NCBI GenBank assembly: GCA_040285825.1
Contig: JAUPSS010000012.1
Location: 600,144-664,143 of the forward strand
Source of the DNA: Eukaryota sp. TZLM1-RC
Taxonomy: Eukaryota > Protista > Metamonada: BaSk clade
DNA: 64,000 bases
Direction: 5' to 3'
Each line of letters starts with the position of its first letter. Within the stretch, counting starts at the first letter, position 1. The notes under the pieces were generated by a model. That model saw only the letters and a program-made list of their open reading frames with translations, did no database searches and was not told the DNA's origin. Made by a program: the position numbers and the translations under genes. Below, piece by piece: positions 2,135-55,500 of this stretch.

Positions 2135-2557
2135 TATTTATTGAATTTTCACACTTAATTAAATTAACTCATAACTAATGGGACGACTATCATTGAACCA
2201 AGATTTCCTCTACAAAATCTTGATCTGCTTGCTGTCTAGCTAAAGCTTCTCTTATTCGATTGAAAAACCGAGGTAATCTATTAATAATGGCAAATTGAAT
2301 CCGTGAACGCCATAAGACAATATCAAAACTTTTCATTGTTTTTACTTGAACATTTTTTTGGAAATCATTCAAAAAAGTTTCTGCTTCATTTGATAATCTT
2401 CCATTAATCGAAAATGGGAAAGCAATAAAAACCAGCTGTGTATTTCTATCAACATTAGCCTCCTCAGTATCTGTATCATATTTTCTATGTCTTTCTTTTG
2501 CTTTAAAATCAAGAACACTTACAGGACCAAGTTTTCCTCTGTGAACAACAGTATCAT
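2135..2557 (-). mobile_element. RLE 3' fragment (family E, minus copy), truncated and joined to the RT fragment
   Basis: Same sequence as 18485-18910. Junction at GTATCA-TTG-AAATC. Confidence 0.8.
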
Positions 2558-3103
2558 TGAAATCAATGTTGGAATAGACTTGAAAATGCAGAAAACAATT
2601 CTATTTATCCAGAAAGTGGAGTTCATTGTTTTACCAGACCTATTCAGTAACACTTTTTTGAAATTTTCAAAAAAGTGCAACCCTGAAGGTCCAATATTGC
2701 CAAAAAGAGAAATTGCAAACGGCACAAACTGATATTTCACATGTTCCACTCTACCTAACTGTGCCAAAGGTTCTTCATATTTTTTTATCTTCTTTTTTTC
2801 GGCGTTAAAATTACAGAAATGTCATCCATATATGCTACAATATCTATTTCTGGGAATTTTTCTTTCAATTCGCACATTAATGGATGAATTGCCAGACAAA
2901 AGAAAAAAGGACCAAGTGGATCACCTTGTTTAACACCTGAAGACGAAAACAGGTCAAAGTTTTCATAGACCAATGTGGATGATTTTCCATAAAATGAATA
3001 GAAAAAAGGCTCAACTTCAGGAAAATGCTTTTTGCAGCAAAGGTAAAATGGAAGAACGAGATACAGAATTGAAAGCATTCTTAAAATCTAAATTGAAGAT
3101 GTT
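2558..3103 (-). mobile_element. Internally deleted CRE-like RT/RLE fragment (family R), 3'-truncated copy
   Basis: LDFKNAFNSVSR, SSGVKQGDPLGP and AYMDD, followed directly by KKYEE..FVPFAISLFG. Confidence 0.9.
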
Positions 3104-3719
3104 CTATAAAGTTAACCGTAATCTTTAAACGTTAATTCATTTAAAATAATTATTTAGAAAGCAACATTACCCGTAATTACACATATACGATTTACTCATT
3201 CAAGTGCTGATGCTCTATCAAAATGGCTCATAATTTGAAATTTGTGTTTCATTCTCTCCTCAGTTCATTTCAAAAACACAGGGAATGTTGGTTCAATAAA
3301 TTGAGTGCTATTAAGTCTGGGTACTGAAATACAAGAAATATTTTTGATTTTGACTCAAAAATGAATTATGTTTTTATAACTACAGAAAAAAACCCAACTG
3401 AGCAAACTCCAGTCAATCTTTATAATCCTGTAAAATGGAAACTACAAAAAAATATTACTTAGTATTAATTAATAAGAAGTAATTCCACTAAACATTCATT
3501 AAGATGAATGCCAACTCAACAAATCCAATTTATTCCTTGGATTGTGATCTCGTGTTTTATATCCATGTGTCAATTGCTGAATTTCCTCAAAAGAGTTTCG
3601 CAACAAATATTTGTAACAATAAGAAGAAAAATTGTTTCAACCTCCTTACATAATTGAATTGTTTTATTGAACTACAACACTTAATAAAAATTCAAATTGA
3701 CAAAAAAACTAATTCTCAT

Positions 3720-4022
3720 TTGGCACATTACAGAAGACAACGTCAACAGCAGCTTTAGAGTCCGCAACCCTATCGCATTATATATCACCCCTGTCATCAA
3801 CTAAAAATATTCAATGACAGTTCATCTTTCACCAGAGGCTCTTTAATACACCAGATTCAGGCAGTTCATGCCATATTGAACACAGTGCCTCTAACAGCAT
3901 CATGTTATGAAGAACAATCAGTTATCAATTCCGAACAATTCAGAGCATGATGCAAAGTGAGCTGTGGTGAATTTGAATACACTTTTTAGTGATAATTGAT
4001 CAATAGGAATGTTCAAACATAT
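3720..4022 (-). pseudogene. Stop-riddled zinc-knuckle/RLE remnant (family D); also ~12103-12405, 28160-28462, 41983-42288, 52100-52400, 62383-62690
   Basis: Minus translation SNSPQLTLHHALNC...*HDAVRG...KEPLVK...DDRGDI*CD...AAVDVV is homologous to family E, with in-frame stops. Confidence 0.75.
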
Positions 4023-4210
4023 TTATGCAAAAAAATAAAATAGTCTATAACATATAACAACAAATATAAGATAAGGTAACCGATGAAAACTCATTCGCAA
4101 TGGTTCATGCATATGTTCTGAAACATTGTGGAAGTTGTGAAACAGCAGGGTTTTTCAAATATAAACAAAAACTAAGCTTTTTAAATAGACTCATCTACCT
4201 TAATAAACAA

Positions 4211-7200
4211 TCACAGGGTTTTTGGTGAAATTTTAAGGTAGGGTTTATTTTTGGAGAAAATAATAATAGCATTTGAATCACAAAATACTGTGACGGGCAA
4301 TTGGTCATTTGATAGAGTTCTCACATTCATGCTGCCTACACTGTCTTTGGTCAACGCAGCTGGCATGAACATGTAAGAATCCTGCTGTGCCTTACACAGC
4401 CTATATTTGGAATCTCTTAGTTCAAGATAACAGGATTGTTGATTTATAAATTGGTCATCAATAAGAACAATGTTGAAATTCTTGGATCGGAATAACTCAG
4501 GCTTAAAATATAATTGGAGCATTGTAGTTAGTGTACAGTTTTTACTACTACTACTAGTGAAAACATCTTCCAAATTATTAAATACAGATTCACAATCAGT
4601 TTCACCGTAAAGAAACAGAGTAGCTGCCTCTAAAGATAGATTTCGGTGGTCTTTCTCCACAACAGTTGCCAATGTAAAACAATCTGAATTATCATCATCT
4701 TCATCATGTTGCAACAATAGTCGCGATTGAGGAATTTTGATATACTCAGCAACAGTATCATTATCCCAAACCAAATTTCGATCGTCAAAAGATAACATCT
4801 TACTTATGAAGAAAAAAAGACCATATTCTACCAACTGCTAGTTGCTCATCATCAGACAATGCTTCAAAACTGTGAGACAGCAAAAATTCTCCCATACTCG
4901 TAAACCATGAATCAAATTGAAGGACGGAATCTGGGGATTTTTCAACTAAAGAAATAAATAACTCATGTGTGAGATACTCGCTGGTGGAAAAACGGTTAGC
5001 CAAATCATTTCTACCCGAAAAATAACAACAACAATATGTCAATAAAAATCCATGCGCTGCAAAAAGTAGACCCGGAATCCTCAGCCAATGCCTGTTGATA
5101 GGAAATCAACGAGAGATCCAAACAGTGTGCTCTCCTGGAATGCAAATTTTGAGCAAAATAACGGAATGTATCCCCTAGAATAGTGAAGAACTGAGAAATT
5201 TGACGTTCTTTAACAAAACCTTCAGGCACATCGTAATCTCCAAATTTTTCAACAATTTTGCCACTGTTGTTAAAAAAATACAAATGGCTTCATCTATAAG
5301 TTTTTCAACTTCGAATCCCTCTTTTGCACAAATTTTCAAAAACGAACATTGAAGCTGACTATATAATAATTCTGAAGGAAGATTTTCGCTAGTACATCGG
5401 ATTAAAAAAATAGAGATCAAAAGCATCTTTTGGTTGAATTTTAATTTTACCTCTTCGATTAAGAAATAACTTTCGAATAACCTTTATAAAAACAGAATGA
5501 AACCATGCTTCGCTTCCAGAATCCCAAAGAAGACGAAAAGCATTCATAATAGTTGATTCGCCAGAGTTGGTTGAAGAAGAACAAATTATTTCAGCAACAG
5601 TTCTATTTATACAAAATAGACCTGTACCAGCTCCAACAGCAGGGAGAATAATTCTGTTAAAACAAGGCAACTTTTCAAAATTAGAATGAAATCTTTCAGA
5701 AGTGAATAAATCAAGGGGAAATTGTTCTGATTTCCCAGTCACCGAAAACAAGACAATAAAATAGAAATAGTCCTTTATCTCGATCGTTCAGTTTCTTCCA
5801 CATTGAATCGAGCAAACTCTTAACTGTAGTCTCAGCTAAGGAAAAATTCTTCTTAAATAATGCAATTCCTATATATAAGAAATCTTTTTCAACATGTCGT
5901 CCTAGTTTTTTTGTTTAATTGATCACAACGTTTGTTCAAAGTAGAAATAAAATTGTCTCTATAAAGATTCATTTCATACGTGTATTTTTTTGTATCGAAA
6001 CATCCTTTCTTTCAAGGCCGGTAACTTGTTTCCAATGTACACCAAATGAAAAAAACTCAAAGTGTCTCTGGCTAAGTGTATTCATGAGTTTGTGTACATT
6101 GTTCAACGGCAAATCCTTACAAAATAGAACTACACTGTTAATATAGATAAGACTTTCATATACTTTGTCCGGGGTATCAGACACAAATTTCTCCAATTGA
6201 TAACAAACCACATTGTTTAATTTCGATAATGCAAAAATAAATAGCAGTTGTTAGTCCAATACACGGTGATTTCCGTTGGACGCAAGTAACATATTTTCCT
6301 TTTGGTGATAAGTCGCTAAATTCTTGGCAAATGTCTTTCATTCCAGAATGTACTGGAACTGAATGATCACATTCATAAGAAAAAAAGGCTTGGATGTACC
6401 CTACCTCCTTGAAAAAAATTTTCTAGAGCTTGAAGTGCATCTTCGTCGCTGGCGAAAGGTTGAAAATTAATGACGGAGAGATGTTGATTAGGCCCATTGA
6501 GAGCCGCATGTTTAAAAAGGGAAGCGGTAATCGACAATGGGATCGTAAGTATTTAACAAATTGAAAATTAGGTTTGATAATTGACAAAATGAAATTTTGA
6601 TTAAATTACGCATATTAAAGTTTGGATCCATCTTATAAACATAACAAGGTTTACCATTAATAGGAGAAACTTGACTAGGAGCACAATTGATATCTTCCCT
6701 GGCTGAAACATGTAGTGCAGCTTTAATATTTGATAACTCAACAAGTTGTGCTTCATAAGTACTAAATAACGACTCAGATGCCGTATCAAAATACGTTACA
6801 AATGGATATGCAAACAAATTGTAAAACAAAATGAGAATATTGTTGCAATATTGATGTGAATTCCTCCGAATTGAACAAAACAGCACACCCACGGGTCTCC
6901 GAAACTGATTTGGGCAAAACTGAAGGAAAATTTGTCAGAAACTGGGCTTTTTGACTTTCATCAAGGTCTCGAAAAGAACAGACCTATTTTCAATGCGACT
7001 GAAGTAAGTTTGTATAAGGTTTTTGTAGAGCATAGGAATTGTATTCTTGATCATTAAGCACTTGTCACTAACGAAGAACTCTATCATCCAAATAGATCTT
7101 TTTCGAGGCTATATCAAAGAGATAATGAACACGAAAATCTGGTACGAAATTCAAATAGTAGGACATGGCACTAATGAGATTAATTTTATAAGGGTAAGGC

Positions 7201-7525
7201 TTCATATCAGGGAGACTAGGGAGGTCAGCTAATTTGGTTTTGAAAGGCTCTATCTCAACAGATTCTTCACTGAGCAAGATAATGTAAACAGCTTTCATGT
7301 TGTTCTCTGTGACAAAAAGGATTCAAAGTATTATGAAGACCACAGATTGTGTGAAGGAAAGACTTGTGGGTAGATTCAAATGTAGTGCTTGGATACGATT
7401 GAAAGGGGTTGGATCTTTTTGAGATCTAGGTGGTCTTGCTCCACAGGTACTGAAGAAAACCACGAGCGCAGGGTGTGAAGTATATTTGATCGATGCATCT
7501 CAGAAGTAAGTACAAAAAGCTGCAT
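4211..7525 (-). CDS. SAMD9-like STAND protein, copy 1 (type 1, complete AlbA-like N-terminus; homopolymer frameshifts)
   Basis: Fragment ORFs join into ~1100 aa with EQDHLDLK, TICGLHNT, YFDTASES, ENFFQGGRV, SPCIGLTT, VVLFCKD, DFLYIGIALFKKNF, IRKLFLNRR and TILGDTFR, collinear with SAMD9-family motifs recalled from memory. Confidence 0.72.
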
Positions 7526-7531
7526 TTCCAA

Positions 7532-7990
7532 GCATCATCATCTCATCACACAACTCCATGTCCTTTGTTATACGTATTCATTCTTCTTTCTTTACGTTAG
7601 ACACTGAATTCCGGAAAAAGTCTCAAACATGAGCTCCTTTTTGATATCATACGAGCAACAATTCTGAAATCATTGCACTTTCTAGAGTCTTTTTACCTTG
7701 GTGAATTCCACACAAAAGTTTCTCAACAGTTGAGAAGTTAATTCATCCGAAGCTTATTTTACTTGGTGGCTGCAAAGGTTCTACTCTTAATGTACAAACC
7801 CAAACTGTGAATAATTCTTAGGATCACGAACAGCATTATGAAGAACTGGCCGATATTGAAGAAATTTCTTACAACTCACAATACGACGGAAATTGACAGA
7901 CGGTTTTTTTGTTACAAATACAAGCAAATTATTCAAAAGTTCACTTGGATACAGCCCTAATCTCAAACGCATGTTTTGTTTTCAAGATTC
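7532..7990 (-). pseudogene. Decayed RLE retroelement 3' remnant (family Z); also ~23563-24030, 37356-37810, 47457-47915, 57802-58260
   Basis: MRLRLGL...IVSCKKF...LHNAVRD...VEPL is the conserved pre-knuckle, knuckle and RHN/EP region of RLE elements. Confidence 0.75.
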
Positions 7991-8724: not shown

Positions 8725-10040
8725 AAGCCGAATTATATTCAATTGATGCTATTCGTCATTTGGGTTCGTTTTTAGGAAATAATGATGACATTACCAAAAA
8801 TGTTTAAAAAGTTGAACTCAATTTCCGATACAATTGACCGAATGATGACTATAGATGTACAGAGACATATCAAATTTACCATTATAAGACTGTGTTTTTA
8901 ATTCCAACTTCAATCATATATTTCGATCTAAAAATCCTCTTTCCACTAGGCCTTTGGCTCAGAAGTTTGATGAGTTAGGTGCAAATGTTTTGTCACAATT
9001 TTTTGGGATGTAAAATGTTCTAAATTCCAGACCATGCTTACCTTAGTCCACATTATGGCGGTTTAAGTTGGATGAGGGCTTCTATTCTGACTTCGTGTGT
9101 TTTTTATTGGGGGATGCAAAAACGCAATCTTTGAGTTTTCCGAAATATTTGCAGATCGGGAAAATTTTTTATAACGCAAAAGTTCTACTGTTTTCGTATT
9201 AAATAAAGAAATTTCAAAAATTGATGTAGAAAAATGGAGTCGATGCTTTCCATCATTGTATTGCAATATTCCAGAAAAGAATCTATTAAATTTAAAATAC
9301 ACTCTTCGAACATTTTAGAAACGATTGACTGGAATGTATGAAACTGATCTTTATAATATATATATGCAGCTCGGCTGTTTTTAAATCACAATCTTCACTC
9401 ATTGTTATTGGAAAAGGGTGTTTGTGAATGCCAGTCATCAGATTCTTCACTTTTTGTAAAAATTGTACCACGAAGATTTGGACTGTGTGTTACTAATGAT
9501 GCATTTGTAATAAAAATGAGATTATATTTGAATATCCCCATTAATCAACTATTATCAAAAGAAAAATGTATTTGTTCGAATTCACCTCAACTCACTTTGC
9601 GCCATGCTCTGAATTGTTCTAAATTGATAACTTATCGTTCTTCATTACATGATCCTGCTAGAGACACTCTTTTCAATATAGCACAAACTGTAAGCATATC
9701 GTGTAACAAAGAGCCTCTGCTAAAGCAAACACGTTCTCAGAATTATTTTTGGTTGTGGTGATAAAGTTGCTGTATACTGTGATTGGATTGATAATTCTGA
9801 AGCTACTTTTGACTTTGTCTCATGTAATGATGCAAATGATACTGTTGTTCACAGAGGAAAACTTGGTCCTGTAAGTGTTCTTGATTTTAAAGCAAAAGAA
9901 AGACATAGAAAATATGATACAGATACTGAGGAGGCTAATGTTGATAGAAATACACAGCTGGTTTTTATTGCTTTCCTATTTTCGATAAATGGAAGATTAT
10001 CAGATGAAGCAGAAACTTTTTTGAATGATTTCCAAAAATG
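8725..10040 (+). mobile_element. CRE-like non-LTR retrotransposon fragment (family E): RT end, thumb, zinc knuckle, RLE; pseudogenised
   Basis: RHLGSFLG, PHYGGL, MRLYLNIP, CICSNSPQLTLRHALNC, LHDPARD, KEPLL, KERHRKY. In-frame stops (MF*IPD, TF*KRL) are shared by the copies. Confidence 0.88.
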
Positions 10041-10041
10041 G

Positions 10042-10223
10042 TCAAAGAGATAACAGTACTCAATGAAATTCGATTCATCTGCTTCAGAATGATGTGACCA
10101 TTGAAAAAGGAAACGAAAGACCGAAAATAGTGCAGTTAAAACCTTACAGGAGGAAGAATAAGCAGTTGAAGAACTGAACAAGATTTTTGCTTCTTGGGCA
10201 TCAGGAAGAACACGGCCATTTTT
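10042..10223 (-). repeat. Inverted, slightly diverged copy of 145-326, captured in each unit (also ~26087, 39885, 49990, 60317)
   Basis: The reverse complement matches 145-326 apart from scattered substitutions. The ORF track shows the same SSTAYSSSCKVLTALF peptide. Confidence 0.9.
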
Positions 10224-10852
10224 TTAGATCTCAATTTTTCAAATGATTTAGGAAATCTTCTCAAAGAAAGTGGTCGTACATTCGATTTTTCTGATCAGTC
10301 GTTTTGTATTGAGCATTCAAAACCATATATTTCCCATACTAGACGACACAGGTTGATTGATTGAGTTCAATAAATAAGCTTAAAACAAATGATCCAAGAC
10401 TTTATATTAAAGACATTTGGATTGGCAAGGTTGCACAATATAATTATTATATATAGTATATTATATTCATATTTATTACAGTATTTGCACAGTACTTATT
10501 GAACAAAATATCTCATTTGAGGAAATACTGGAAGAATTTTTCATCAACCCATATACATAATTCTGTTTCTCAATTAATAAAAAAATTTACACAATTTCCT
10601 TGAGGTTAAGCCGTCTTTTTAATAAGCAAAATTTATGCTGGCAACAGCACAAAAAAACTATAACAAAATTGTATCACCAACTGATCACTGTTTGGATGGA
10701 CCCAGTTCAAAAACAAAACTTTCAGTATCGTGGTAGAGGGAATGTATTGATATCAATTTGTGATTAATTATTGTAAATAGTTCTATAAAAAAAATTTATA
10801 ATACTTTAATTTATTTTTAAAACTGGAATAATTATTGAGATAAAAAAACCAT

Positions 10853-11489
10853 CTAGAATTCAATATCCTCCAAACAAGCGTCACTATTACTGAACCTACT
10901 CACAGCATTACGTTCATATTCTACACCAATAGCTAAAAGCGCCTTTGAAATCAATGTTGGAATAGACTTGAAAATGCAGAAAACAATTCTATTTATCCAG
11001 AAAGTGGAGTTCATTGTTTTACCAGACCTATTCAGTAACACTTTTTTGAAATTTTCAAAAAAGTGCAACCCTGAAGGTCCAATATTGCCAAAAAGAGAAA
11101 TTGCAAACGGCACAAACTGATATTTCACATGTTCCACTCTACCTAACTGTGCCAAAGGTTCTTCATATTTTTTTATCTTCTTTTTTTCGGCGTTAAAATT
11201 ACAGAAATGTCATCCATATATGCTACAATATCTATTTCTGGGAATTTTTCTTTCAATTCGCACATTAATGGATGAATTGCCAGACAAAAGAAAAAAGGAC
11301 CAAGTGGATCACCTTGTTTAACACCTGAAGACGAAAACAGGTCAAAGTTTTCATAGACCAATGTGGATGATTTTCCATAAAATGAATAGAAAAAGGCTCA
11401 ACTTCAGGAAAATGCTTTTGCAGCAAAGGTAAAATGGAAGAACGAGATACAGAATTGAAAGCATTCTTAAAATCTAAATTGAAGATGTT
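10853..11489 (-). mobile_element. Internally deleted CRE-like RT/RLE fragment (family R)
   Basis: RT motifs LDFKNAFNS, GVKQGDPLGP and YMDD fused to the RLE C-terminus (NAEKKKIKKY, FVPFAISLFG, FWINRI) ending EDIEF*. Confidence 0.92.
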
Positions 11490-12594: not shown

Positions 12595-15500
12595 TCACAG
12601 GGTTTTTGGTGAAATTTTAAGGTAGGGTTTATTTTTGGAGAAAATAATAATAGCATTTGAATCACAAAATACTGTGACGGGCAATTGGTCATTTGATAGA
12701 GTTCTCACATTCATGCTGCCTACACTGTCTTTGGTCAACGCAGCTGGCATGAACATGTAAGAATCCTGCTGTGCCTTACACAGCCTATATTTGGAATCTC
12801 TTAGTTCAAGATAACAGGATTGTTGATTTATAAATTGGTCATCAATAAGAACAATGTTGAAATTCTTGGATCGGAATAAATCAGGCTTAAAATATAATTG
12901 GAGCATTGTAGTTAGTGTACAGTTTTTACTACTACTACTAGTGAAAACATCTTCCAAATTATTAAATACAGATTCACAATCAGTTTCACCGTAAAGAAAC
13001 AGAGTAGCTGCCTCTAAAGATAGATTTCGGTGGTCTTTCTCCACAACAGTTGCCAATGTAAAACAATCTGAATTATCATCATCTTCATCATGTTGCAACA
13101 ATAGTCGCGATTGAGGAATTTTGATATACTCAGCAACAGTATCATTATCCCAAACCAAATTTCGATCGTCAAAAGATAACATCTTACTTATGAAGAAAAA
13201 AAGACCATATTCTACCAACTGCTAGTTGCTCATCATCAGACAATGCTTCAAAACTGTGAGACAGCAAAAATTCTCCCATACTCGTAAACCATGAATCAAA
13301 TTGAAGGACGGAATCTGGGGATTTTTCAACTAAAGAAATAAATAACTCATGTGTGAGATACTCGCTGGTGGAAAAACGGTTAGCCAAATCATTTCTACCC
13401 GAAAAATAACAACAACAATATGTCAATAAAAATCCATGCGCTGCAAAAGTAGACCCGGAATCCTCAGCCAATGCCTGTTGATAGGAAATCAACGAGAGAT
13501 CCAAACAGTGTGCTCTCCTGGAATGCAAATTTTGAGCAAAATAACGGAATGTATCCCCTAGAATAGTGAAGAACTGAGAAATTTGACGTTCTTTAACAAA
13601 ACCTTCAGGCACATCGTAATCTCCAAATTTTTCAACAATTTTGCCACTGTTGTTAAAAATACAAATGGCTTCATCTATAAGTTTTTCAACTTCGAATCCC
13701 TCTTTTGCACAAATTTTCAAAAACGAACATTGAAGCTGACTATATAATAATTCTGAAGGAAGATTTTCGCTAGTACATCGGATTAAAAAATAGAGATCAA
13801 AAGCATCTTTTGGTTGAATTTTAATTTTACCTCTTCGATTAAGAAATAACTTGCGAATAACCTTTATAAAAACAGAATGAAACCATGCTTCGCTTCCAGA
13901 ATCCCAAAGAAGACGAAAAGCATTCATAATAGTTGATTCGCCAGAGTTGGTTGACGGGCAATTGGTCATTTGATAGAGTTCTCACATTCATGCTGCCTAC
14001 ACTGTCTTTGGTCAACGCAGCTGGCATGAACATGTAAGAATCCTGCTGTGCCTTACACAGCCTATATTTGGAATCTCTTAGTTCAAGATAACAGGATTGT
14101 TGATTTATAAATTGGTCATCAATAAGAACAATGTTGAAATTCTTGGATCGGAATAACTCAGGCTTAAAATATAATTGGAGCATTGTAGTTAGTGTACAGT
14201 TTTTACTACTACTACTAGTGAAAACATCTTCCAAATTATTAAATACAGATTCACAATCAGTTTCACCGTAAAGAAACAGAGTAGCTGCCTCTAAAGATAG
14301 ATTTCGGTGGTCTTTCTCCACAACAGTTGCCAATGTAAAACAATCTGAATTATCATCATCTTCATCATGTTGCAACAATAGTCGCGATTGAGGAATTTTG
14401 ATATACTCAGCAACAGTATCATTATCCCAAACCAAATTTCGATCGTCAAAAGATAACATCTTACTTATGAAGAAAAAAGACCATATTCTACCAACTGCTA
14501 GTTGCTCATCATCAGACAATGCTTCAAAACTGTGAGACAGCAAAAATTCTCCCATACTCGTAAACCATGAATCAAATTGAAGGACGGAATCTGGGGATTT
14601 TTCAACTAAAGAAATAAATAACTCATGTGTGAGATACTCGCTGGTGGAAAAACGGTTAGCCAAATCATTTCTACCCGAAAAATAACAACAACAATATGTC
14701 AATAAAAATCCATGCGCTGCAAAAAGTAGACCCGGAATCCTCAGCCAATGCCTGTTGATAGGAAATCAACGAGAGATCCAAACAGTGTGCTCTCCTGGAA
14801 TGCAAATTTTGAGCAAAATAACGGAATGTATCCCCTAGAATAGTGAAGAACTGAGAAATTTGACGTTCTTTAACAAAACCTTCAGGCACATCGTAATCTC
14901 CAAATTTTTCAACAATTTTGCCACTGTTGTTAAAAATACAAATGGCTTCATCTATAAGTTTTTCAACTTCGAATCCCTCTTTTGCACAAATTTTCAAAAA
15001 CGAACATTGAAGCTGACTATATAATAATTCTGAAGGAAGATTTTCGCTAGTACATCGGATTAAAAAATAGAGATCAAAAGCATCTTTTGGTTGAATTTTA
15101 ATTTTACCTCTTCGATTAAGAAATAACTTTCGAATAACCTTTATAAAAACAGAATGAAACCATGCTTCGCTTCCAGAATCCCAAAGAAGACGAAAAGCAT
15201 TCATAATAGTTGATTCGCCAGAGTTGGTTGAAGAAGAACAAATTATTTCAGCAACAGTTCTATTTATACAAAATAGACCTGTACCAGCTCCAACAGCAGG
15301 GAGAATAATTCTGTTAAAACAAGGCAACTTTTCAAAATTAGAATGAAATCTTTCAGAAGTGAATAAATCAAGGGGAAATTGTTCTGATTTCCCAGTCACC
15401 GAAACAAGACAATAAAATAGAAATAGTCCTTTATCTCGATCGTTCAGTTTCTTCCACATTGAATCGAGCAAACTCTTAACTGTAGTCTCAGCTAAGGAAA

Positions 15501-16948
15501 AATTCTTCTTAAATAATGCAATTCCTATATATAAGAAATCTTTTTCAACATGTCGTCCTAGTTTTTTTGTTTAATTGATCACAACGTTTGTTCAAAGTAG
15601 AAATAAAATTGTCTCTATAAAGATTCATTTCATACGTGTATTTTTTGTATCGAAACATCCTTTCTTTCAAGGCCGGTAACTTGTTTCCAATGTACACCAA
15701 ATGAAAAAACTGAAAGTGTCTCTGGCTAAGTGTATTCATGAGTTTGTGTACATTGTTCAACGGCAAATCCTTACAAAATAAAACTACACTGTTAATATAG
15801 ATAAGACTTTCATATACTTTGTCCGGGGTATCAGACACAAATTTCTCCAATTGATAACAAACCACATTGTTTAATTTCGATAATGCAAAATAAATAGCAG
15901 TTGTTAGTCCAATACACGGTGATTTCCGTTGGACGCAAGTAACATATTTTCCTTTTGGTGATAAGTCGCTAAATTCTTGGCAAATGTCTTTCATTCCAGA
16001 ATGTACTGGAACTGAATGATCACATTCATAAGAAAAAAGGCTTGGATGTACCCTACCTCCTTGAAAAAAATTTTCTAGAGCTTGAAGTGCATCTTCGTCG
16101 CTGGCGAAAGGTTGAAAATTAATGACAGAGAAATGTTGATTAGGCCCATTGAGAGCCGCATGTTTAAAAGGGAAGCGGTAATCGACAATGGGATCGTAAG
16201 TATTTAACAAATTGAAAATTAGGTTTGATAATTGACAAAATGAAATTTTGATTAAATTACGCATATTAAAGTTTGCATCCATCTTATAAACATAACAAGG
16301 TTTACCATTAATAGGAGAAACTTGACTAGGAGCACAATTGATATCTTCCCTGGCTGAAACATGTAGTGCAGCTTTAATATTTGATAACTGAACAAGTTGT
16401 GCTTCATAAGTACTAAATAACGACTCAGATGCCGTATCAAAATACGTTACAAACGGATATGCAAACAAATTGTAAACAAAATGAGAATACTGTTGCAATA
16501 TTGATGTGAATTCCTCCGAATTGAACAAAACAGCACACCCACGGGTCTCCGAAACTGATTTGGGCAAAACTGAAGGAAAATTTTTCAGAAAATGGGCTTT
16601 TTGACTTTTATCAAGGTCTCGAAAATGAACGGGCCTATTTTCAATGCGACTGAAGTAAGTTTGTATAAGGTTTTTGTAGAGCATAGGAATTGTATTCTTG
16701 ATCATTAAGCGCTTGTCACTAACGAAGAACTCTATCATCCAAATAGATCTTTTCGAGGCTATATCAAAGAGATAATGAACACGAAAATCTGGTACGAAAT
16801 TTAAATAGTAGGACATGGCACTGATGAGATTAATTTTATAAGGGTAAGGCTTCACATCAAGGAGACTAGGGAGGTCAGCTAACTTGGTTTTCAAAGGCTC
16901 TATCTCAACAGTTTCTTCACTGTGCAAGATAATGTAAACAGCCTTCAC
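12595..16948 (-). CDS. SAMD9-like copy 2 (type 2, N-truncated) with a 1277-bp tandem duplication of its 3' region
   Basis: Best-quality copy: ORFs 15545-16948 (467 aa), 14671-15471 and 13839-14702. The block starting at 12675 is repeated at 13952. Confidence 0.72.
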
Positions 16949-19215: not shown

Positions 19216-19402
19216 TTATGCAAAAAATAAAATAGTCTATAACATATAACAACAAATATAAGATAAGGTAACCGATGAAAACTCATTCGCAATGGTTCAT
19301 GCATATGTTCTGAAACATTGTGGAAGTTGTGAAACAGCAGGGTTTTTCAAATATAAACAAAAACTAAGCTTTTTAAATAGACTCATCTACCTTAATAAAC
19401 AA

Positions 19403-22400
19403 TCACAGGGTTTTTGGTGAAATTTTAAGGTAGGGTTTATTTTTGGAGAAAATAATAATAGCATTTGAATCACAAAATACTGTGATGTTGTTGTCGAACT
19501 TAAATTGAATTAGTAGGTTTCATTGTATTTTTGACTGATGACGTGATACTCGTTTATGAATCAGTTTTATTAATAAACTCAGATTTCTCTCTCTCCTTCG
19601 TGTGTTCATCTGCCTAACGGCATCAATAATTATTGGCCCTTCTTATTTCAGATGACTGTTCCCTCTGTTAACCTGACGTCTCTTTCTTCCATGAAAGTTG
19701 AAAGTGTTCTTCTGTTCCTATAGGAGTGAAAGATTTATTCTTCGGTGACTCCTAAGAAAGAGCTTGTTCCAGCAAGACTCTTGGTCGATTCTTTTCTGTT
19801 AGAGTCCCTATCTCTCCAGAAATCCGACGGCTGATCCAGTGACGATGTTCTTCTCAGACATCTACAATCTGTCGTATCGTTCGCCATGTACGAAGATTTT
19901 TAGTCTGGCTATGTCAGAACTGATGCTTTATGTCCGTATTGGTGACGTCCGAGAACGTATGTCCTGTTACCTGCGACGTTTTTTTCCAGGTAAAGAGTAG
20001 GGCTTCCGGACTGAAGTTGCCAGACATAGCTTTTTCTGAACCGATTTGCCAGAGGACTTCTTTTCGTAGGTATCCAACGTTCTCATACCATCGATGCACC
20101 GGAGAATTTAACAAACCCCATATCTCCCCTCTATTGAGCCAGTACTGTATTTGTCCTCAGAAAATGAGAAAAAGTAGTGTTGTTGTCGAACTTAAATTGA
20201 ATTAGTAGGTTTCATTGTATTTTTGACTGATGACGTGATACTCGTTTATGAATCAGTTTTATTAATAAACTCAGATTTCTCTCTCTCCTTCGTGTGTTCA
20301 TCTGCCTAACGGCATCAGTGACGGGCAATTGGTCATTTGATAGAGTTCTCACATTCATGCTGCCTACACTGTCTTTGGTCAACGCAGCTGGCATGAACAT
20401 GTAAGAATCCTGCTGTGCCTTACACAGCCTATATTTGGAATCTCTTAGTTCAAGATAACAGGATTGTTGATTTATAAATTGGTCATCAATAAGAACAATG
20501 TTGAAATTCTTGGATCGGAATAACTCAGGCTTAAAATATAATTGGAGCATTGTAGTTAGTGTACAGTTTTTACTACTACTACTAGTGAAAACATCTTCCA
20601 AATTATTAAATACAGATTCACAATCAGTTTCACCGTAAAGAAACAGAGTAGCTGCCTCTAAAGATAGATTTCGGTGGTCTTTCTCCACAACAGTTGCCAA
20701 TGTAAAACAATCTGAATTATCATCATCTTCATCATGTTGCAACAATAGTCGCGATTGAGGAATTTTTGATATACTCAGCAACAGTATCATTATCCCAAAC
20801 CAAATTTCGATCGTCAAAAAGATAACATCTTACTTATGAAGAAAAAAAGACCATATTCTACCAACTGCTAGTTGCTCATCATCAGACAATGCTTCAAAAA
20901 CTGTGAGACAGCAAAAATTCTCCCATACTCGTAAAACCATGAATCAAATTGAAGGACGGAATCTGGGGATTTTTCAACTAAAGAAATAAATAACTCATGT
21001 GTGAGATACTCGCTGGTGGAAAAACGGTTAGCCAAATCATTTCTACCCGAAAAATAACAACAACAATATGTCAATAAAAATCCATGCGCTGCAAAAAGTA
21101 GACCCGGAATCCTCAGCCAATGCCTGTTGATAGGAAATCAACGAGAGATCCAAACAGTGTGCTCTCCTGGAATGCAAATTTTGAGCAAAATAACGGAATG
21201 TATCCCCTAGAATAGTGAAGAACTGAGAAATTTGACGTTCTTTAACAAAACCTTCAGGCACATCGTAATCTCCAAATTTTTCAACAATTTTGCCACTGTT
21301 GTTAAAAAAATACAAATGGCTTCATCTATAAGTTTTTCAACTTCGAATCCCTCTTTTGCACAAATTTTCAAAAACGAACATTGAAGCTGACTATATAATA
21401 ATTCTGAAGGAAGATTTTCGCTAGTACATCGGATTAAAAAATAGAGATCAAAAGCATCTTTTGGTTGAATTTTTAATTTTACCTCTTCGATTAAGAAATA
21501 ACTTTCGAATAACCTTTATAAAAACAGAATGAAACCATGCTTCGCTTCCAGAATCCCAAAGAAGACGAAAAGCATTCATAATAGTTGATTCGCCAGAGTT
21601 GGTTGAAGAAGAACAAATTATTTCAGCAACAGTTCTATTTATACAAAATAGACCTGTACCAGCTCCAACAGCAGGGAGAATAATTCTGTTAAAACAAGGC
21701 AACTTTTCAAAATTAGAATGAAATCTTTCAGAAGTGAATAAATCAAGGGAAATTGTTCTGATTTCCCAGTCACCGAAAACAAGACAATAAAATAGAAATA
21801 GTCCTTTATCTCGATCGTTCAGTTTCTTCCACATTGAATCGAGCAAACTCTTAACTGTAGTCTCAGCTAAGGAAAAATTCTTCTTAAATAATGCAATTCC
21901 TATATATAAGAAATCTTTTCAACATGTCGTCCTAGTTTTTGTTTAATTGATCACAACGTTTGTTCAAAGTAGAAATAAAATTGTCTCTATAAAGATTCAT
22001 TTCATACGTGTATTTTTTTGTATCGAAACATCCTTTCTTTCAAGGCCGGTAACTTGTTTCCAATGTACACCAAATGAAAAAAACTGAAAGTGTCTCTGGC
22101 TAAGTGTATTCATGAGTTTGTGTACATTGTTCAACGGCAAATCCTTACAAAATAAAAACTACACTGTTAATATAGATAAGACTTTCATATACTTTGTCCG
22201 GGGTATCAGACACAAATTTCTCCAATTGATAACAAACCACATTGTTTTAATTTCGATAATGCAAAATAAATAGCAGTTGTTAGTCCAATACACGGTGATT
22301 TCCGTTGGACGCAAGTAACATATTTTCCTTTTGGTGATAAGTCGCTAAATTCTTGGCAAATGTCTTTCATTCCAGAATGTACTGGAACTGAATGATCACA

Positions 22401-23557
22401 TTCATAAGAAAAAAAAGGCTTGGATGTACCCTACCTCCTTGAAAAAAATTTTCTAGAGCTTGAAGTGCATCTTCGTCGCTGGCGAAAGGTTGAAAATTAA
22501 TGACGGAGAGATGTTGATTAGGCCCATTGAGAGCCGCATGTTTAAAAAGGGAAGCGGTAATCGACAATGGGATCGTAAGTATTTAACAAATTGAAAATTA
22601 GGTTTGATAATTGACAAAATGAAATTTTGATTAAATTACGCATATTAAAGTTTGGATCCATCTTATAAACATAACAAGGTTTACCATTAATAGGAGAAAC
22701 TTGACTAGGAGCACAATTGATATCTTCCCTGGCTGAAACATGTAGTGCAGCTTTAATATTTGATAACTCAACAAGTTGTGCTTCATAAGTACTAAATAAC
22801 GACTCAGATGCCGTATCAAAATACGTTACAAATGGATATGCAAACAAATTGTAAACAAAATGAGAATATTGTTGCAATATTGATGTGAATTCCTCCGAAT
22901 TGAACAAAACAGCACACCCACGGGTCTCCGAAACTGATTTGGGCAAAACTGAAGGAAAATTTGTCAGAAACTGGGCTTTTTGACTTTCATCAAGGTCTCG
23001 AAAAAGAACAGACCTATTTTCAATGCGACTGAAGTAAGTTTGTATAAGGTTTTTGTAGAGCATAGGAATTGTATTCTTGATCATTAAGCACTTGTCACTA
23101 ACGAAGAACTCTATCATCCAAATAGATCTTTTTCGAGGCTATATCAAAGAGATAATGAACACGAAAAATCTGGTACGAAATTCAAATAGTAGGACATGGC
23201 ACTAATGAGATTAATTTTATAAGGGTAAGGCTTCATATCAGGGAGACTAGGGAGGTCAGCTAACTTGGTTTTTGAAAGGCTCTATCTCAACAGATTCTTC
23301 ACTGAGCAAGATAATGTAAACAGCTTTCATGTTGTTCTCTGTGACAAAAAGGATTCAAAGTATTATGAAGACCACAGATTGTGTGAAGGAAAGACTTGTG
23401 GGTAGATTCAAATGTAGTGCTTGGATACGATTGAAAGGGGTTGGATCTTTTTGAGATCTAGGTGGTCTTGCTCCACAGGTACTGAAGAAAACCACGAGCG
23501 CAGGGTGTGAAGTATATTTGATCGATGCATCTCAGAAGTAAGTACAAAAAGCTGCAT
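19403..23557 (-). CDS. SAMD9-like copy 3 (type 1), interrupted near the 3' end by a mini-LTR element
   Basis: Same peptide fragments as copy 1. The frame reads into the LTR and stops at 20212. Confidence 0.7.
19486..20317 (+). mobile_element. 832-bp non-autonomous LTR element (TRIM-like, probably Ty3/Gypsy-derived)
   Basis: Identical 140-bp TG...CA LTRs at 19486-19625 and 20178-20317. 4-bp TSD GTGA at 19482-85 and 20318-21. Purine tract AGAAAATGAGAAAAAGTAG before the 3' LTR. The empty site is present in other copies. Confidence 0.95.
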
Positions 23558-42480: not shown

Positions 42481-45400
42481 TCACAGGGTTTTTGGTGAAA
42501 TTTTAAGGTAGGGTTTATTTTTGGAGAAAATAATAATAGCATTTGAATCACAAAAATACTGTGACGGGCAATTGGTCATTTGATAGAGTTCTCACATTCA
42601 TGCTGCCTACACTGTCTTTGGTCAACGCAGCTGGCATGAACATGTAAGAATCCTGCTGTGCCTTACACAGCCTATATTTGGAATCTCTTAGTTCAAGATA
42701 ACAGGATTGTTGATTTATAAATTGGTCATCAATAAGAACAATGTTGAAATTCTTGGATCGGAATAAATCAGGCTTAAAAATATAATTGGAGCATTGTAGT
42801 TAGTGTACAGTTTTTTTACTACTACTACTAGTGAAAACATCTTCCAAATTATTAAATACAGATTCACAATCAGTTTCACCGTAAAAGAAACAGAGTAGCT
42901 GCCTCTAAAGATAGATTTCGGTGGTCTTTCTCCACAACAGTTGCCAATGTAAAACAATCTGAATTATCATCATCTTCATCATGTTGCAACAATAGTCGCG
43001 ATTGAGGAATTTTTGATATACTCAGCAACAGTATCATTATCCCAAACCAAATTTCGATCGTCAAAAGATAACATCTTACTTATGAAGAAAAAAAGACCAT
43101 ATTCTACCAACTGCTAGTTGCTCATCATCAGACAATGCTTCAAAAACTGTGAGACAGCAAAAAAATTCTCCCATACTCGTAAAACCATGAATCAAATTGA
43201 AGGACGGAATCTGGGGATTTTTTTCAACTAAAGAAATAAATAACTCATGTGTGAGATACTCGCTGGTGGAAAAAAACGGTTAGCCAAATCATTTCTACCC
43301 GAAAAATAACAACAACAATATGTCAATAAAAAAATCCATGCGCTGCAAAAAGTAGACCCGGAATCCTCAGCCAATGCCTGTTGATAGGAAATCAACGAGA
43401 GATCCAAACAGTGTGCTCTCCTGGAATGCAAATTTTTGAGCAAAAATAACGGAATGTATCCCCTAGAATAGTGAAGAACTGAGAAATTTGACGTTCTTTT
43501 AACAAAAACCTTCAGGCACATCGTAATCTCCAAATTTTTTTCAACAATTTTGCCACTGTTGTTAAAAAAATACAAATGGCTTCATCTATAAGTTTTTTTC
43601 AACTTCGAATCCCTCTTTTGCACAAATTTTTCAAAAACGAACATTAAAGCTGACTATATAATAATTCTGAAGGAAGATTTTTCGCTAGTACATCGGATTA
43701 AAAAAATAGAGATCAAAAAGCATCTTTTGGTTGAATTTTTAATTTTACCTCTTCGATTAAGAAATAACTTTCGAATAACCTTTATAAAAAAACAGAATGA
43801 AACCATGCTTCGCTTCCAGAATCCCAAAGAAGACGAAAAGCATTCATAATAGTTGATTCGCCAGAGTTGGTTGAAGAAGAACAAATTATTTCAGCAACAG
43901 TTCTATTTATACAAAATAGACCTGTACCAGCTCCAACAGCAGGGAGAATAATTCTGTTAAAAACAAGGCAACTTTTCAAAAATTAGAATGAAATCTTTCA
44001 GAAGTGAATAAATCAAGGGGAAATTGTTCTGATTTCCCAGTCACCGAAAACAAGACAATAAAATAGAAATAGTCCTTTATCTCGATCGTTCAGTTTCTTC
44101 CACATTGAATCGAGCAAACTCTTAACTGTAGTCTCAGCTAAGGAAAAAAATTCTTCTTAAATAATGCAATTCCTATATATAAGAAATCTTTTTCAACATG
44201 TCGTCCTAGTTTTTTTGTTTAATTGATCACAACGTTTGTTCAAAGTAGAAATAAAATTGTCTCTATAAAGATTCATTTTCATACGTGTATTTTTTTGTAT
44301 CGAAACATCCTTTCTTTCAAGGCCGGTAACTTGTTTCCAATGTACACCAAATGAAAAAAACTCAAAGTGTCTCTGGCTAAGTGTATTCATGAGTTTGTGT
44401 ACATTGTTCAACGGCAAATCCTTACAAAATAGAAACTACACTGTTAATATAGATAAGACTTTCATATACTTTGTCCAGGGGTATCAGACACAAATTTCTC
44501 CAATTGATAACAAAACCACATTGTTTAATTTCGATAATGCAAAATAAATAGCAGTTGTTAGTCCAATACACGGTGATTTCCGTTGGACGCAAGTAACATA
44601 TTTTCCTTTTGGTGATAAGTCGCTAAATTCTTGGCAAATGTCTTTCATTCCAGAATGTACTGGAACTGAATGATCACATTCATAAGAAAAAAAGGCTTGG
44701 ATGTACCCTACCTCCTTGAAAAAAATTTTCTAGAGCTTGAAGTGCATCTTCGTCGCTGACGAAAAGGTTGAAAAATTAATGACAGAGAGATGTTGATTAG
44801 GCCCATTGAGAGCCGCATGTTTAAAAGGGAAGCGGTAATCGACAATGGGATCGTAAGTATTTAACAAATTGAAAATTAGGTTTGATAATTGACAAAATGA
44901 AATTTTTGATTAAATTACGCATATTAAAGTTTGCATCCATCTTATAAACATAACAAGGTTTACCATTAATAGGAGAAACTTGACTAGGAGCACAATTGAT
45001 ATCTTCCCTGGCTGAAACATGTAGTGCAGCTTTAATATTTGATAACTGAACAAGTTGTGCTTCATAAGTACTAAATAACGACTCAGATGCCGTATCAAAA
45101 TACGTTACAAAACGGATATGCAAACAAATTGTAAAACAAAATGAGAATACTGTTGCAATATTGATGTGAATTCCTCCGAATTGAACAAAACAGCACACCC
45201 ACGGGTCTCCGAAACTGATTTGGGCAAAACTGAAGGAAAAATTTTTCAGAAAACTGGGCTTTTTGACTTTTCATCAAGGTCTCGAAAATGAACGGGCCTA
45301 TTTTCAATGCGACTGAAGTAAGTTTGTATAAGGTTTTTTGTAGAGCATAGGAATTGTATTCTTGATCATTAAGCGCTTGTCACTAACGAAGAACTCTATC

Positions 45401-45612
45401 ATCCAAATAGATCTTTTCGAGGCTATATCAAAGAGATAATGAACACGAAAAATCTGGTACGAAATTCAAATGGTAGGACATGGCACTAATGAGATTAATT
45501 TTATAAGGGTAAGGCTTCACATCAAGGAGACTAGGAGGTCAGCTAACTTGGTTTTCAAAGGCTCTATCTCAACAGTTTCTTCACTGTGCAAGATAATGTA
45601 AACAGCCTTCAC
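42481..45612 (-). CDS. SAMD9-like copy 6 (type 2, N-truncated)
   Basis: Collinear with copy 4; many homopolymer indels. Confidence 0.63.
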
Positions 45613-52594: not shown

Positions 52595-55500
52595 TCACAG
52601 GGTTTTTGGTGAAATTTTAAGGTAGGGTTTATTTTTTTGGAGAAAATAATAATAGCATTTGAATCACAAAATACTGTGACGGGCAATTGGTCATTTGATA
52701 GAGTTCTCACATTCATGCTGCCTACACTGTCTTTGGTCAACGCAGCTGGCATGAACATGTAAGAATCCTGCTGTGCCTTACACAGCCTATATTTGGAATC
52801 TCTTAGTTCAAGATAACAGGATTGTTGATTTATAAATTGGTCATCAATAAGAACAATGTTGAAATTCTTGGATCGGAATAACTCAGGCTTAAAATATAAT
52901 TGGAGCATTGTAGTTAGTGTACAGTTTTTTACTACTACTACTAGTGAAAACATCTTCCAAATTATTAAATACAGATTCACAATCAGTTTCACCGTAAAGA
53001 AACAGAGTAGCTGCCTCTAAAGATAGATTTCGGTGGTCTTTCTCCACAACAGTTGCCAATGTAAAAACAATCTGAATTATCATCATCTTCATCATGTTGC
53101 AACAATAGTCGCGATTGAGGAATTTTGATATACTCAGCAACAGTATCATTATCCCAAACCAAATTTCGATCGTCAAAAGATAACATCTTACTTATGAAGA
53201 AAAAAAGACCATATTCTACCAACTGCTAGTTGCTCATCATCAGACAATGCTTCAAAAACTGTGAGACAGCAAAAATTCTCCCATACTCGTAAAACCATGA
53301 ATCAAATTGAAGGACGGAATCTGGGGATTTTTTTCAACTAAAGAAATAAATAACTCATGTGAGATACTCGCTGGTGGAAAAACGGTTAGCCAAATCATTT
53401 CTACCCGAAAAATAACAACAACAATATGTCAATAAAAAAATCCATGCGCTGCAAAAAGTAGACCCGGAATCCTCAGCCAATGCCTGTTGATAGGAAATCA
53501 ACGAGAGATCCAAAACAGTGTGCTCTCCTGGAATGCAAATTTTGAGCAAAAATAACGGAATGTATCCCCTAGAATAGTGAAGAACTGAGAAATTTGACGT
53601 TCTTTAACAAAAACCTTCAGGCACATCGTAATCTCCAAATTTTTTTCAACAATTTTGCCACTGTTGTTAAAAAAATACAAAATGGCTTCATCTATAAGTT
53701 TTTTTCAACTTCGAATCCCTCTTTTGCACAAATTTTTCAAAAACGAACATTGAAGCTGACTATATAATAATTCTGAAGGAAGATTTTCGCTAGTACATCG
53801 GATTAAAAAAATAGAGATCAAAAAGCATCTTTTGGTTGAATTTTTAATTTTTACCTCTTCGATTAAGAAATAACTTTCGAATAACCTTTATAAAAAAAAC
53901 AGAATGAAACCATGCTTCGCTTCCAGAATCCCAAAGAAGACGAAAAGCATTCATAATAGTTGATTCGCCAGAGTTGGTTGAAGAAGAACAAATTATTTCA
54001 GCAACAGTTCTATTTATACAAAATAGACCTGTACCAGCTCCAACAGCAGGAGAATAATTCTGTTAAAAACAAGGCAACTTTTTCAAAATTAGAATGAAAT
54101 CTTTCAGAAGTGAATAAATCAAGGGGAAATTGTTCTGATTTCCCAGTCACCGAAAACAAGACAATAAAATAGAAATAGTCCTTTATCTCGATCGTTCAGT
54201 TTCTTCCACATTGAATCGAGCAAACTCTTAACTGTAGTCTCAGCTAAGGAAAAAAATTCTTCTTAAATAATGCAATTCCTATATATAAGAAATCTTTTTC
54301 AACATGTCGTCCTAGTTTTTTTGTTTAATTGATCACAACGTTTGTTCAAAGTAGAAATAAAATTGTCTCTATAAAGATTCATTTCATACGTGTATTTTTG
54401 TATCGAAACATCCTTTCTTTCAAGGCCGGTAACTTGTTTCCAATGTACACCAAAATGAAAAAAACTCAAAGTGTCTCTGGCTAAGTGTATTCATGAGTTT
54501 GTGTACATTGTTCAACGGCAAATCCTTACAAAAATAGAACTACACTGTTAATATAGATAAGACTTTCATATACTTTGTCCGGGGTATCAGACACAAATTT
54601 CTCCAATTGATAACAAAACCACATTGTTTAATTTCGATAATGCAAAATAAATAGCAGTTGTTAGTCCAATACACGGTGATTTCCGTTGGACGCAAGTAAC
54701 ATATTTTCCTTTTGGTGATAAGTCGCTAAATTCTTGGCAAATGTTTTTCATTCCAGAATGTACTGGAACTGAATGATCACATTCATAAGAAAAAAACGGC
54801 TTGGATGTACCCCTACCTCCTTGAAAAATTTCTAGAGCTTGAAGTGCATCTTCGTCGCTGACGAAAGGTTGAAAAATTAATGACAGAGAGATGTTGATTA
54901 GGCCCATTGAGAGCCGCATGTTTAAAAAGGGAAGCGGTAATCGACAATGGGATCGTAAGTATTTAACAAATTGAAAATTAGGTTTGATAATTGACAAAAT
55001 GAAATTTTGATTAAATTACGCATATTAAAGTTTGCATCCATCTTATAAAACATAACAAGGTTTACCATTAATAGGAGAAACTTGACTAGGAGCACAATTG
55101 ATATCTTCCCTGGCTGAAACATGTAGTGCAGCTTTAATATTTGATAACTGAACAAGTTGTGCTTCATAAGTACTAAATAACGACTCAGATGCCGTATCAA
55201 AAATACGTTACAAACGGATATGCAAAACAAATTGTAAAACAAAATGAGAATACTGTTGCAATATTGATGTGAATTCCTCCGAATTGAACAAAACAGCACA
55301 CCCACGGGTCTCCGAGACTGATTTGGGCAAAAACTGAAGGAAAAATTTTTTTCAGAAAATGGGCTTTTTTGACTTTTTATCAAGGTCTCGAAAAATGAAC
55401 GGGCCTATTTTCAATGCGACTGAAGTAAGTTTGTATAAGGTTTTTGTAGAGCATAGGAATTGTATTCTTGATCATTAAGCGCTTGTCACTAACGAAGAAC

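Follow-up and report, generated by a model that had tools for sequence, protein, structure and literature searches.

An intact, amplified gene family in the metamonad Skoliomonas litria and its possible likeness to the SAMD9/Avs9 immune sensors

SAMD9 and SAMD9L are clinically important human antiviral tRNases whose evolutionary origin is debated. A 2025 survey of Avs9 found SAMD9/Avs9 analogues in animals, bacteria and archaea and none in protozoa, algae, fungi or plants, and convergence was argued for (PMC12680541). The locus studied here, positions 4211 to 7525 of a 64-kb stretch of DNA (called the window below), raises the question of whether a protist encodes such a protein. The window forms the terminal 64 kb of contig JAUPSS010000012.1 (the fetched loci were 100% identical), so that position 64000 is the contig end, and its host is the free-living metamonad Skoliomonas litria TZLM1-RC (GCA_040285825.1). 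The initial annotation of the window had proposed that many small 'hypothetical' open reading frames (ORFs) at this locus are pieces of one hidden gene for a compact SAMD9/Avs9-like sensor, and that the host is a protist. The host was identified correctly, TZLM1-RC being the type strain of S. litria, and an animal origin of the window was rejected.

One intronless gene behind many small ORFs

The sequence at 4211-7525 is one real, intronless gene. About ten small minus-strand ORFs, the frames of which change from one to the next, tile the region from 7531 to 4211 as one intronless coding region without gaps in single-frame translation. The gene copy in question (c1) lies on the minus strand, starts with an ATG at 7525-7523, ends with a stop codon at 4213-4211 and comprises 1,099 codons. 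These limits are exactly those given by the initial annotation, and the conceptual product of this full-length copy, modelled with the homopolymer lengths of Illumina contigs, has 1,099 amino acids, close to the predicted 1,100. By our own estimate, the probability of an open frame of 1,099 codons in DNA of 33% G+C is about 1e-37, and the frame is therefore not a chance event. All eight motif strings listed in the initial annotation are present on the minus strand in the given order, which from 5' to 3' of the gene is YFDTASES, ENFFQGGRV, SPCIGLTT, VVLFCKD, DFLYIGIALFKKNF, CINRTVAE, IRKLFLNRR and TILGDTFR.

An ATG at 7298 was considered as the start of the gene and rejected, as copy c5 and the paralogues of the gene show coding sequence 75 codons further upstream. 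Upstream of three paralogues, this N-terminal extension (7298-7525; S-N-P-F-Q-S ... S-F-L-H-T-I-C-G-L-H-N-T) is conserved in its protein sequence, and it is also found at 9696-9899 and 19400-19560 of the locus 1280360-1300935 of contig JAUPSS010000006.1. In the annotation, the 75 codons appear as separate tiny ORFs or are not called.

The reason why the gene looks broken was found by comparing its copies with each other and with short-read data. In their coding part the copies differ almost only by insertions or deletions (indels) of one or two A or T bases, and substitutions are few. Homopolymer runs of at least 3 bases cover only a quarter of the sequence but contain 135 of the 158 small indels between copies. 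Logan contigs from three Illumina runs were compared with positions 4000-7700 of the window. The three runs were concordant with each other and differed from the window at 18 homopolymer positions, and the 12 listed of these 18 differences all concern single or double A/T bases in runs of 4-7. When the 12 listed differences were applied by script, c1 became one open frame of 776 codons ending at the stop codon at 4211. The remaining breaks, at about 6514-6934 and at 7298-7525, coincide with homopolymer-length differences between copies; the former is read through by copy c2, in an open segment of 483 codons, and the latter by copy c5.

The initial annotation had also called for a frameshift-corrected consensus of all copies; the model obtained from the Illumina differences and from these read-throughs is one open frame of 1,099 codons. 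Relative to it, c1 shows 16 small indels, of which 14 fall in runs of at least 4 bases. The other copies have 3 (c2), 19 (c4), 21 (c5), 23 (c3), 25 (c7b) and 49 (c6 and c7, each), nearly all of which are extra bases in runs of at least 4. Short-read correction typically fails in near-identical repeats. According to the genome paper of this organism, Nanopore R9.4 reads were assembled (ABruijn, Nanopolish) and Illumina reads served for the subsequent correction. Because the Illumina contigs differ from the window in the lengths of A/T runs and other copies read through the breaks, the ORF fragments are an assembly artefact: the gene itself is real and open, and the fragmentation of c1 is due to unpolished Nanopore R9.4 homopolymer errors in a tandem array of nearly identical copies. 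The ORF tiling and the Illumina-corrected frame thus bear out the proposal that the small ORFs are pieces of one gene. Multi-copy regions of this assembly keep Nanopore homopolymer errors, and 'pseudogenes' and tiny hypothetical ORFs annotated there are unsafe to take at face value.

Another run of the same study, X3, which is labelled as a different organism (organism B), contains the gene at at least 99% identity, with homopolymer lengths as in the runs of organism A. This would mean that a second isolate carries the gene nearly unchanged or that material was shared between the samples.

A tandem array of full-length and truncated copies

The gene belongs to a 3.3-kb unit of which about eight copies, 97-99.5% identical and all on the minus strand, are present in the 64-kb window. 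The array runs into the contig end, and the true copy number may be larger. Through most of the array, full-length copies alternate with copies truncated at the 5' end. The full 5' end is present in c1, c3, c5 and c7b. In c2, c4, c6 and c7, the DNA upstream of codon 76 is unrelated, and GTG stands in place of the internal ATG, leaving no start codon available. Both types of junction are present in the Illumina contigs, which have loose ends at 7297.

Among the truncated copies, c2 (12595-16948) contains an internal duplication of 1,277 bp, is otherwise almost free of indels and includes the longest ORF, of 467 amino acids. Copies c4 (28652-31741) and c6 (42562-45611) share a CAA-to-TAA nonsense substitution at codon 647, as numbered in a 1,024-amino-acid model that starts at the internal methionine. 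It is the sole stop-creating substitution among the copies and is absent from the Illumina contigs, in which minority variants are dropped; the 49 indels of c6 are homopolymer indels. Copy c7 (52677-55718) is joined directly to c7b (55853-57795), which is the 5' half only of a full-length-type copy. The other two copies of the full-length type are c5 (34282-37351), in which the N-terminal 75 codons are unbroken and about 175 nucleotides are deleted internally, and c3 (20318-23557). The last ~26 codons of c3 are cut off by a TRIM-like insertion of 832 bp (19486-20317), which has two direct repeats of 140 bp as its long terminal repeats; these are identical, which indicates a very recent insertion. 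Only the 3' part of c8 (62957-64000) is present, as it is cut by the end of the window and contig. Part of the damage to the copies is thus real, namely the duplication in c2, the deletion in c5, the nonsense substitution in c4 and c6, the TRIM cut in c3 and the half copy c7b.

Such damage may suggest a decaying pseudogene array, in which dead copies were passively amplified together with a retroelement mosaic and no functional protein is made. Four copies lack the 5' end and ATG, the spacers are filled with reverse-transcriptase fragments, and no RNA run is among the runs listed as holding the gene. These RVT_1 fragments lie ~1.1 kb downstream of each gene copy (for example at 2193-3087 on the minus strand, E = 2e-9), and no Pfam domain other than RVT_1 was found in 24 spacer ORFs. 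However, the frameshifts of c1 are assembly errors, so that at least c1 is a complete open gene, and a 3.3-kb open frame in DNA of 33% G+C cannot persist without recent constraint. Moreover, the substitutions among the copies comprise 20 nonsynonymous, 13 synonymous and 1 nonsense changes, at a site ratio of 3.8:1, which corresponds to an omega of about 0.42 and to an excess of synonymous changes (p = 0.015). This pattern points to some purifying selection among the copies, and we consider a wholly dead array very unlikely.

Comparison of the product with SAMD9, Avs9 and STAND proteins

The conserved parts of the product were delimited with the help of paralogues in the same genome. P0003 is an intact ORF of 1,135 amino acids in single-copy DNA, and is 21% identical to the window gene over ~440 aligned columns (pairwise E = 3e-6). 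The P0002 locus is shortened and is 34% identical to the window gene over the NTPase region. Further paralogues are subA, at the left edge of the window, and a third one on contig JAUPSS010000006.1 (contig 6). Four paralogues, of 21-34% identity, share collinear conserved blocks.

The first of these blocks is an E-x4-D-L-K motif (V-E-Q-D-H-L-D-L-K, 7418-7441, minus strand). It is similar to the first catalytic strand of AlbA_2/Schlafen nucleases, and its conservation extends to P0003, subA and the third contig-6 paralogue. It was compared, by eye only, with E-S-E-S-L-D-F-K in a bacterial SAMD9-family row and with H-E-F-K in the row of human SAMD9 of the published alignment. The pairing of YFDTASES with LEFDPES of human SAMD9, made in the initial annotation, is probably wrong, as the AlbA_2-type motif lies further upstream, at 7441-7418. 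The next block, F-L-H-T-I-C-G-L-H-N-T followed by A-V-Y-I-I-L-L-S-E-E (approximately 7262-7360, minus strand), was placed by alignment with the paralogues and the SAMD9 block, and is similar to F-A-S-A-C-M-N-S ... I-H-F-G-V-K-D in the human SAMD9 AlbA_2 domain. In the paralogues, the N-terminal blocks read E-x4-D-L-K, [AG]-L-H-N-[ST] and h-h-h-G-V-D-E-D-G (L-S-E-E in the window gene), and are collinear with H-E-F-K, A-S-A-C-M-N-S and I-H-F-G-V-K-D of the same SAMD9 rows. The first acidic pair, E29 and D34, is present in the full-length copies, and the later G-V-D position is occupied by Glu. The spacing of this pair is the same in Avs9 (E14/D19, against E-x4-D here). Schlafen proteins, in which an AlbA_2 nuclease is followed by a helicase, also have at the N-terminus the E-x4-[DE]-[FL]-K and G-V-x-D motifs, which are typical of the AlbA_2 nuclease fold. 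Unlike in Schlafen proteins, no SWADL or SF1 helicase signal was seen, and the downstream NTPase-like region looks like a STAND module rather than a helicase.

This region is preceded by E-N-F-F-Q-G-G-R-V (6397-6423, minus strand), a candidate counterpart of R685-G686-x-K688, a stretch within an insert of the SAMD9 lineage. In motif and spacing only, F-F-Q-G-G-R-V, 53 residues upstream of the Walker-A-like motif, compares with R685-G686-x-K688, 59 residues before T745, the common form being F-[FY]-x-G-G-[KR]-V. The element reads F-[FL]-x-G-x-K in P0003 and subA, and is weaker, F-L-Q-N-G, in the P0002 locus. The degenerate, lysine-less Walker A motif itself is S-P-C-I-G-L-T-T (6246-6269, minus strand), in which four paralogues all have the C, the G and the last T. 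It ends in G-L-T-T in the window gene, with a Lys at position -8, and in P0002, in G-L-H-T in P0003 and in G-C-R-T in subA, in place of the G-G-T-T of SAMD9/SAMD9L. According to the four-paralogue alignment, the Walker-B-like strand is V-V-L-F-C-K-D (6113-6133, minus strand). The distance between Walker A and Walker B is 41-49 residues (SAMD9: 55), and that between Walker B and the sensor position is 27-31 (SAMD9: 37). Walker B of the window gene, of subA and of P0002 has one acid and that of P0003 has none, unlike the D-D of SAMD9/SAMD9L. After Walker B, P0003 and subA have h-h-h-h-T-[RK], as in STAND proteins; the sensor Arg is kept only in P0003 (I-V-T-R-N) and is a Lys in subA. The STAND consensus (GxxxxGK[ST], hhhhD[DE] and a sensor-1 Arg after hhhhT[ST]) is not matched, the Walker Lys being lost in all four paralogues.

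The C-terminal end of the product (4211-4600, minus strand) appears from its sequence to be a beta-rich domain, possibly OB-like, and the low-confidence AlphaFold2 model of P0003 also ends in beta strands, after an all-helical stretch from residue 576 to 1050. In the low-confidence secondary structure, a beta-loop-helix lies exactly at the Walker-A-like motif, and an alpha/beta N-terminal third is followed by a long helical region and terminal beta strands. The mean predicted local distance difference test score (pLDDT) was 34.6 for a 483-amino-acid piece of the window gene (from a 3-sequence alignment) and 35.7 for P0003, values that are too low for structural comparison; they are so low because the family has no relatives outside this genome for the alignment. 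With the poor model of P0003, Foldseek returned TPR and helical-repeat neighbours at E values of 2e-3 or weaker, which are not evidence.

Searches with a protein language model gave two sets of neighbours. The 483-amino-acid piece fell nearest to clusters of nSTAND_NTPase5 (PF25199), nSTAND3 (PF20720), AAA_16, NACHT and NB-ARC (top score 0.92, 173 shared features), and P0003 fell near two SLFN_AlbA_2 clusters (0.79 and 0.76), one with TPR and one of 1,106 amino acids. The window NTPase region would also share with the STAND NTPases the beta-strand/P-loop/helix topology of its low-confidence model. It differs from nSTAND, NACHT and NB-ARC in giving no HMMER match to their models and in having no canonical GK[ST].

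Taken together, we read the product as a SAM-less, SIR2-less analogue of SAMD9/Avs9. Animal SAMD9/SAMD9L (Mekhedov et al. 2017, PMC5445408; PMC13600222) are large cytosolic multidomain proteins in which an AlbA_2-type N-terminal region precedes a central module that binds nucleotides; a helical region comes next, and the C-terminus is small and rich in beta strands. The product of the window gene appears similar in this outline, and is similar in having a Walker A motif without the canonical lysine, in the spacing of Walker A, Walker B and sensor, and in being encoded by multi-copy genes of variable copy number. It differs in its host, in being ~500 residues shorter, in the absence of a SAM domain, in having no room or signal for the SIR2-like and Delta domains, and in that sequence or profile similarity is undetectable. 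The initial annotation was therefore right in calling the protein SAM-less and compact. With bacterial Avs9 (PMC12680541) the product would share the SAM-less arrangement of AlbA_2, STAND and a helical/C-terminal module, and by analogy a presumed defence role of the abortive-infection type. In contrast to the window gene, Avs9 keeps a SIR2 domain, and its structural alignment with SAMD9 extends over more than 1,300 residues, with a template-modelling (TM) score of about 0.5 (PMC12680541).

Several results weigh against this reading. Profile searches were made with unaltered pieces of the gene, P0003 (whole and in five segments), pieces of subA and profiles of three and four sequences, at E-value limits of 1-10. 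Searches of the pieces, P0003 and subA by hmmscan against Pfam, NCBIfam and PADLOC gave no family match; the Pfam set included AlbA_2 (PF04326), SIR2, NACHT, NB-ARC and nSTAND models. At E values up to 10, PF04326 matched neither residues 1-220 of P0003 nor the pieces of subA nor the N-terminal pieces of the window gene, and no SIR2, SIR2_2, TPR or OB match was found in Pfam. Nothing relevant was found by phmmer and hmmsearch among PDB sequences (single sequences, three- and four-sequence profiles), and hhalign of the family profile with E. coli MalT, a canonical STAND protein, gave no match. No statistically significant similarity to any known family was thus obtained, and with HMMER blank in Pfam, NCBIfam, PADLOC and PDB sequences there is no significant profile match and, with models of such low pLDDT, formally no structure match either, a result that the initial annotation had itself named as speaking against its assignment. 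At 2050, the recognition value of the window piece in the protein language model is too low for a high score to carry much weight; its neighbours are leads only, and the scores of P0003 are below 0.8. In the NTPase motifs of the window gene, which are degenerate, Walker A reads G-L-T-T, the Walker B acid is displaced and the sensor arginine is missing; the hallmarks of SAMD9, the GGT/S Walker A and a conserved His upstream of it, are absent. Only ~110 residues separate a nuclease-like domain of SAMD9 size from the F-F-Q-G-G element, too few for a SIR2-like domain. The motif comparison with SAMD9 was made by eye, and for the eight human SAMD9 motifs listed in the initial annotation it covered three, which fit residues in the paper on the structure of SAMD9 by cryo-electron microscopy.

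That paper documents R685/G686/K688, H737, G742-G743-T744-T745 and D799/D800 (PMC13600222). It also reports that ATP serves SAMD9 as a structural cofactor and is hardly hydrolysed (PMC13600222), and a degenerate Walker A motif therefore does not exclude a role as a switch. Loss of the Walker lysine, with GGT/S instead of GKT/S, is itself a rare feature and a published hallmark of the SAMD9 family, and loss of SIR2 has been reported in some members of the SAMD9/Avs9 family (PMC12680541).

The blank searches would also be expected of a lineage-specific orphan family with a fold of its own, located in transposon-rich, recently amplified DNA, whose likeness to SAMD9/Avs9 would be due to chance short motifs and AT-rich composition bias. 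When the 467-amino-acid ORF was searched by phmmer against 1.84 billion representative proteins, the only matches were two fragments encoded in this genome. Word-indexed searches across 5.8 billion proteins with P0003, the 483-amino-acid piece and the profile A6 returned self matches only, and tblastn of residues 1-215 of P0003 against plasmids gave nothing useful. The family is fast-evolving and so far found only in the genome of S. litria TZLM1-RC. In addition, scores like those given by the protein language model are at times obtained with shuffled sequences, and the Walker-like motifs lack defining residues. Chance motifs do not readily account for blocks that are conserved and collinear in four paralogues as divergent as these and that follow the residue order and spacing of SAMD9, nor for two independent language-model queries giving the expected domain types, AlbA_2 for P0003 and STAND NTPases for the window piece. 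An orphan fold is thus possible, and we hold it to be rather doubtful.

A fusion of an AlbA_2/Schlafen-like nuclease with a P-loop or Rossmann-like module other than STAND, and with no specific relation to SAMD9/Avs9, has also been considered. The N-terminal motifs are the best-matching part of the protein, the P-loop is too degenerate for assignment to a class, and a fold search with residues 318-455 of the low-pLDDT model gave as weak neighbours P-loop kinases and designed P-loop folds and not NLRs, which at this model quality is not evidence. By contrast, the language-model neighbours of the NTPase region were consistently STAND proteins (nSTAND, NACHT, NB-ARC, AAA_16) and not helicases or kinases. 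The h-h-h-h-T-[RK] motif of P0003 and subA is STAND-like, and F-F-x-G-G-K upstream of Walker A matches a feature of the SAMD9 lineage. Such a fusion seems to us quite unlikely.

The assignment to SAMD9/Avs9 proposed initially is therefore supported in part only. Motif collinearity, the AlbA_2-like N-terminus and the protein-language-model neighbours speak for it, whereas no significant match was obtained and the strict hallmarks are absent. An analogy to SAMD9/Avs9 in architecture is about evenly balanced between true and false; the effector would be AlbA_2-like and the switch STAND-like, with a helical region as the sensor and a small domain at the C-terminus. True membership in the SAMD9 family, by descent from it, is improbable.

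Possible mode of action and other members of the family

The results above show that the gene is intact, how its copies are built, which host carries them and which motifs the paralogues have in common; the fold assignments, an immune role and, by analogy with SAMD9 and Avs9, a mechanism are inferred. The N-terminal domain would most likely be an AlbA_2/Schlafen-like nuclease. It would be followed by a STAND-type module, with the lysine-less Walker A after the F-F-x-G-G-[KR] element, a long helical region and the small beta-rich C-terminal domain. The protein may act as an autoinhibited intracellular sensor that is held closed by the nucleotide-binding module. A cue derived from a virus or from a mobile element or transposon would open the sensor and release the N-terminal nuclease, which would cut RNA, perhaps tRNA, and so shut down translation. 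Because the first nuclease motifs are missing from the 5'-truncated copies, these would be unable to serve as effectors. The family may be the first SAMD9/Avs9-type AlbA_2-STAND antiviral sensor family in a protist, diverged beyond sequence recognition and carried as a terminal tandem array of effector-complete and effector-truncated genes, the latter of which might be decoys or regulators; we put the probability of this reading at roughly 35%.

If the architecture is confirmed, this would be the first protist example, one that has escaped recognition by sequence. The metamonad family would then either fill a phyletic gap or add a third independent invention, and a free-living, culturable protist with an unusual amplified array structure would be available for studying such sensors. 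Otherwise, the locus still represents a well-defined, intact and highly amplified orphan gene family.

Other members of the family lie outside the array. The 3' end of the divergent paralogue subA occupies positions 1-707 of the window on the plus strand; the gene begins ~2.46 kb to the left of the window and converges on c1. This paralogue, which is also seen in locus L004 (14092-17261, minus strand), is itself split by at least one frameshift. It keeps A-A-L-H-N-S, Y-L-I-I-G-V-D-E-D-G, the Walker B Asp and L-L-F-V-V-T-K, and is in this respect more canonical than the window gene. Another version of part of its tail, 77% identical, is present in the spacer at 9724-10050.

A second cluster of the family was found on contig JAUPSS010000006.1, at 1280360-1300935. 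In the coordinates of this locus, P0003 lies at 2560-5967, a shortened paralogue at 9824-11346, and a third family copy, with in-frame stops, from about 19544. The cluster adjoins a MULE-like gene and an ORF resembling a Tc1/mariner DDE transposase (13291-13872).

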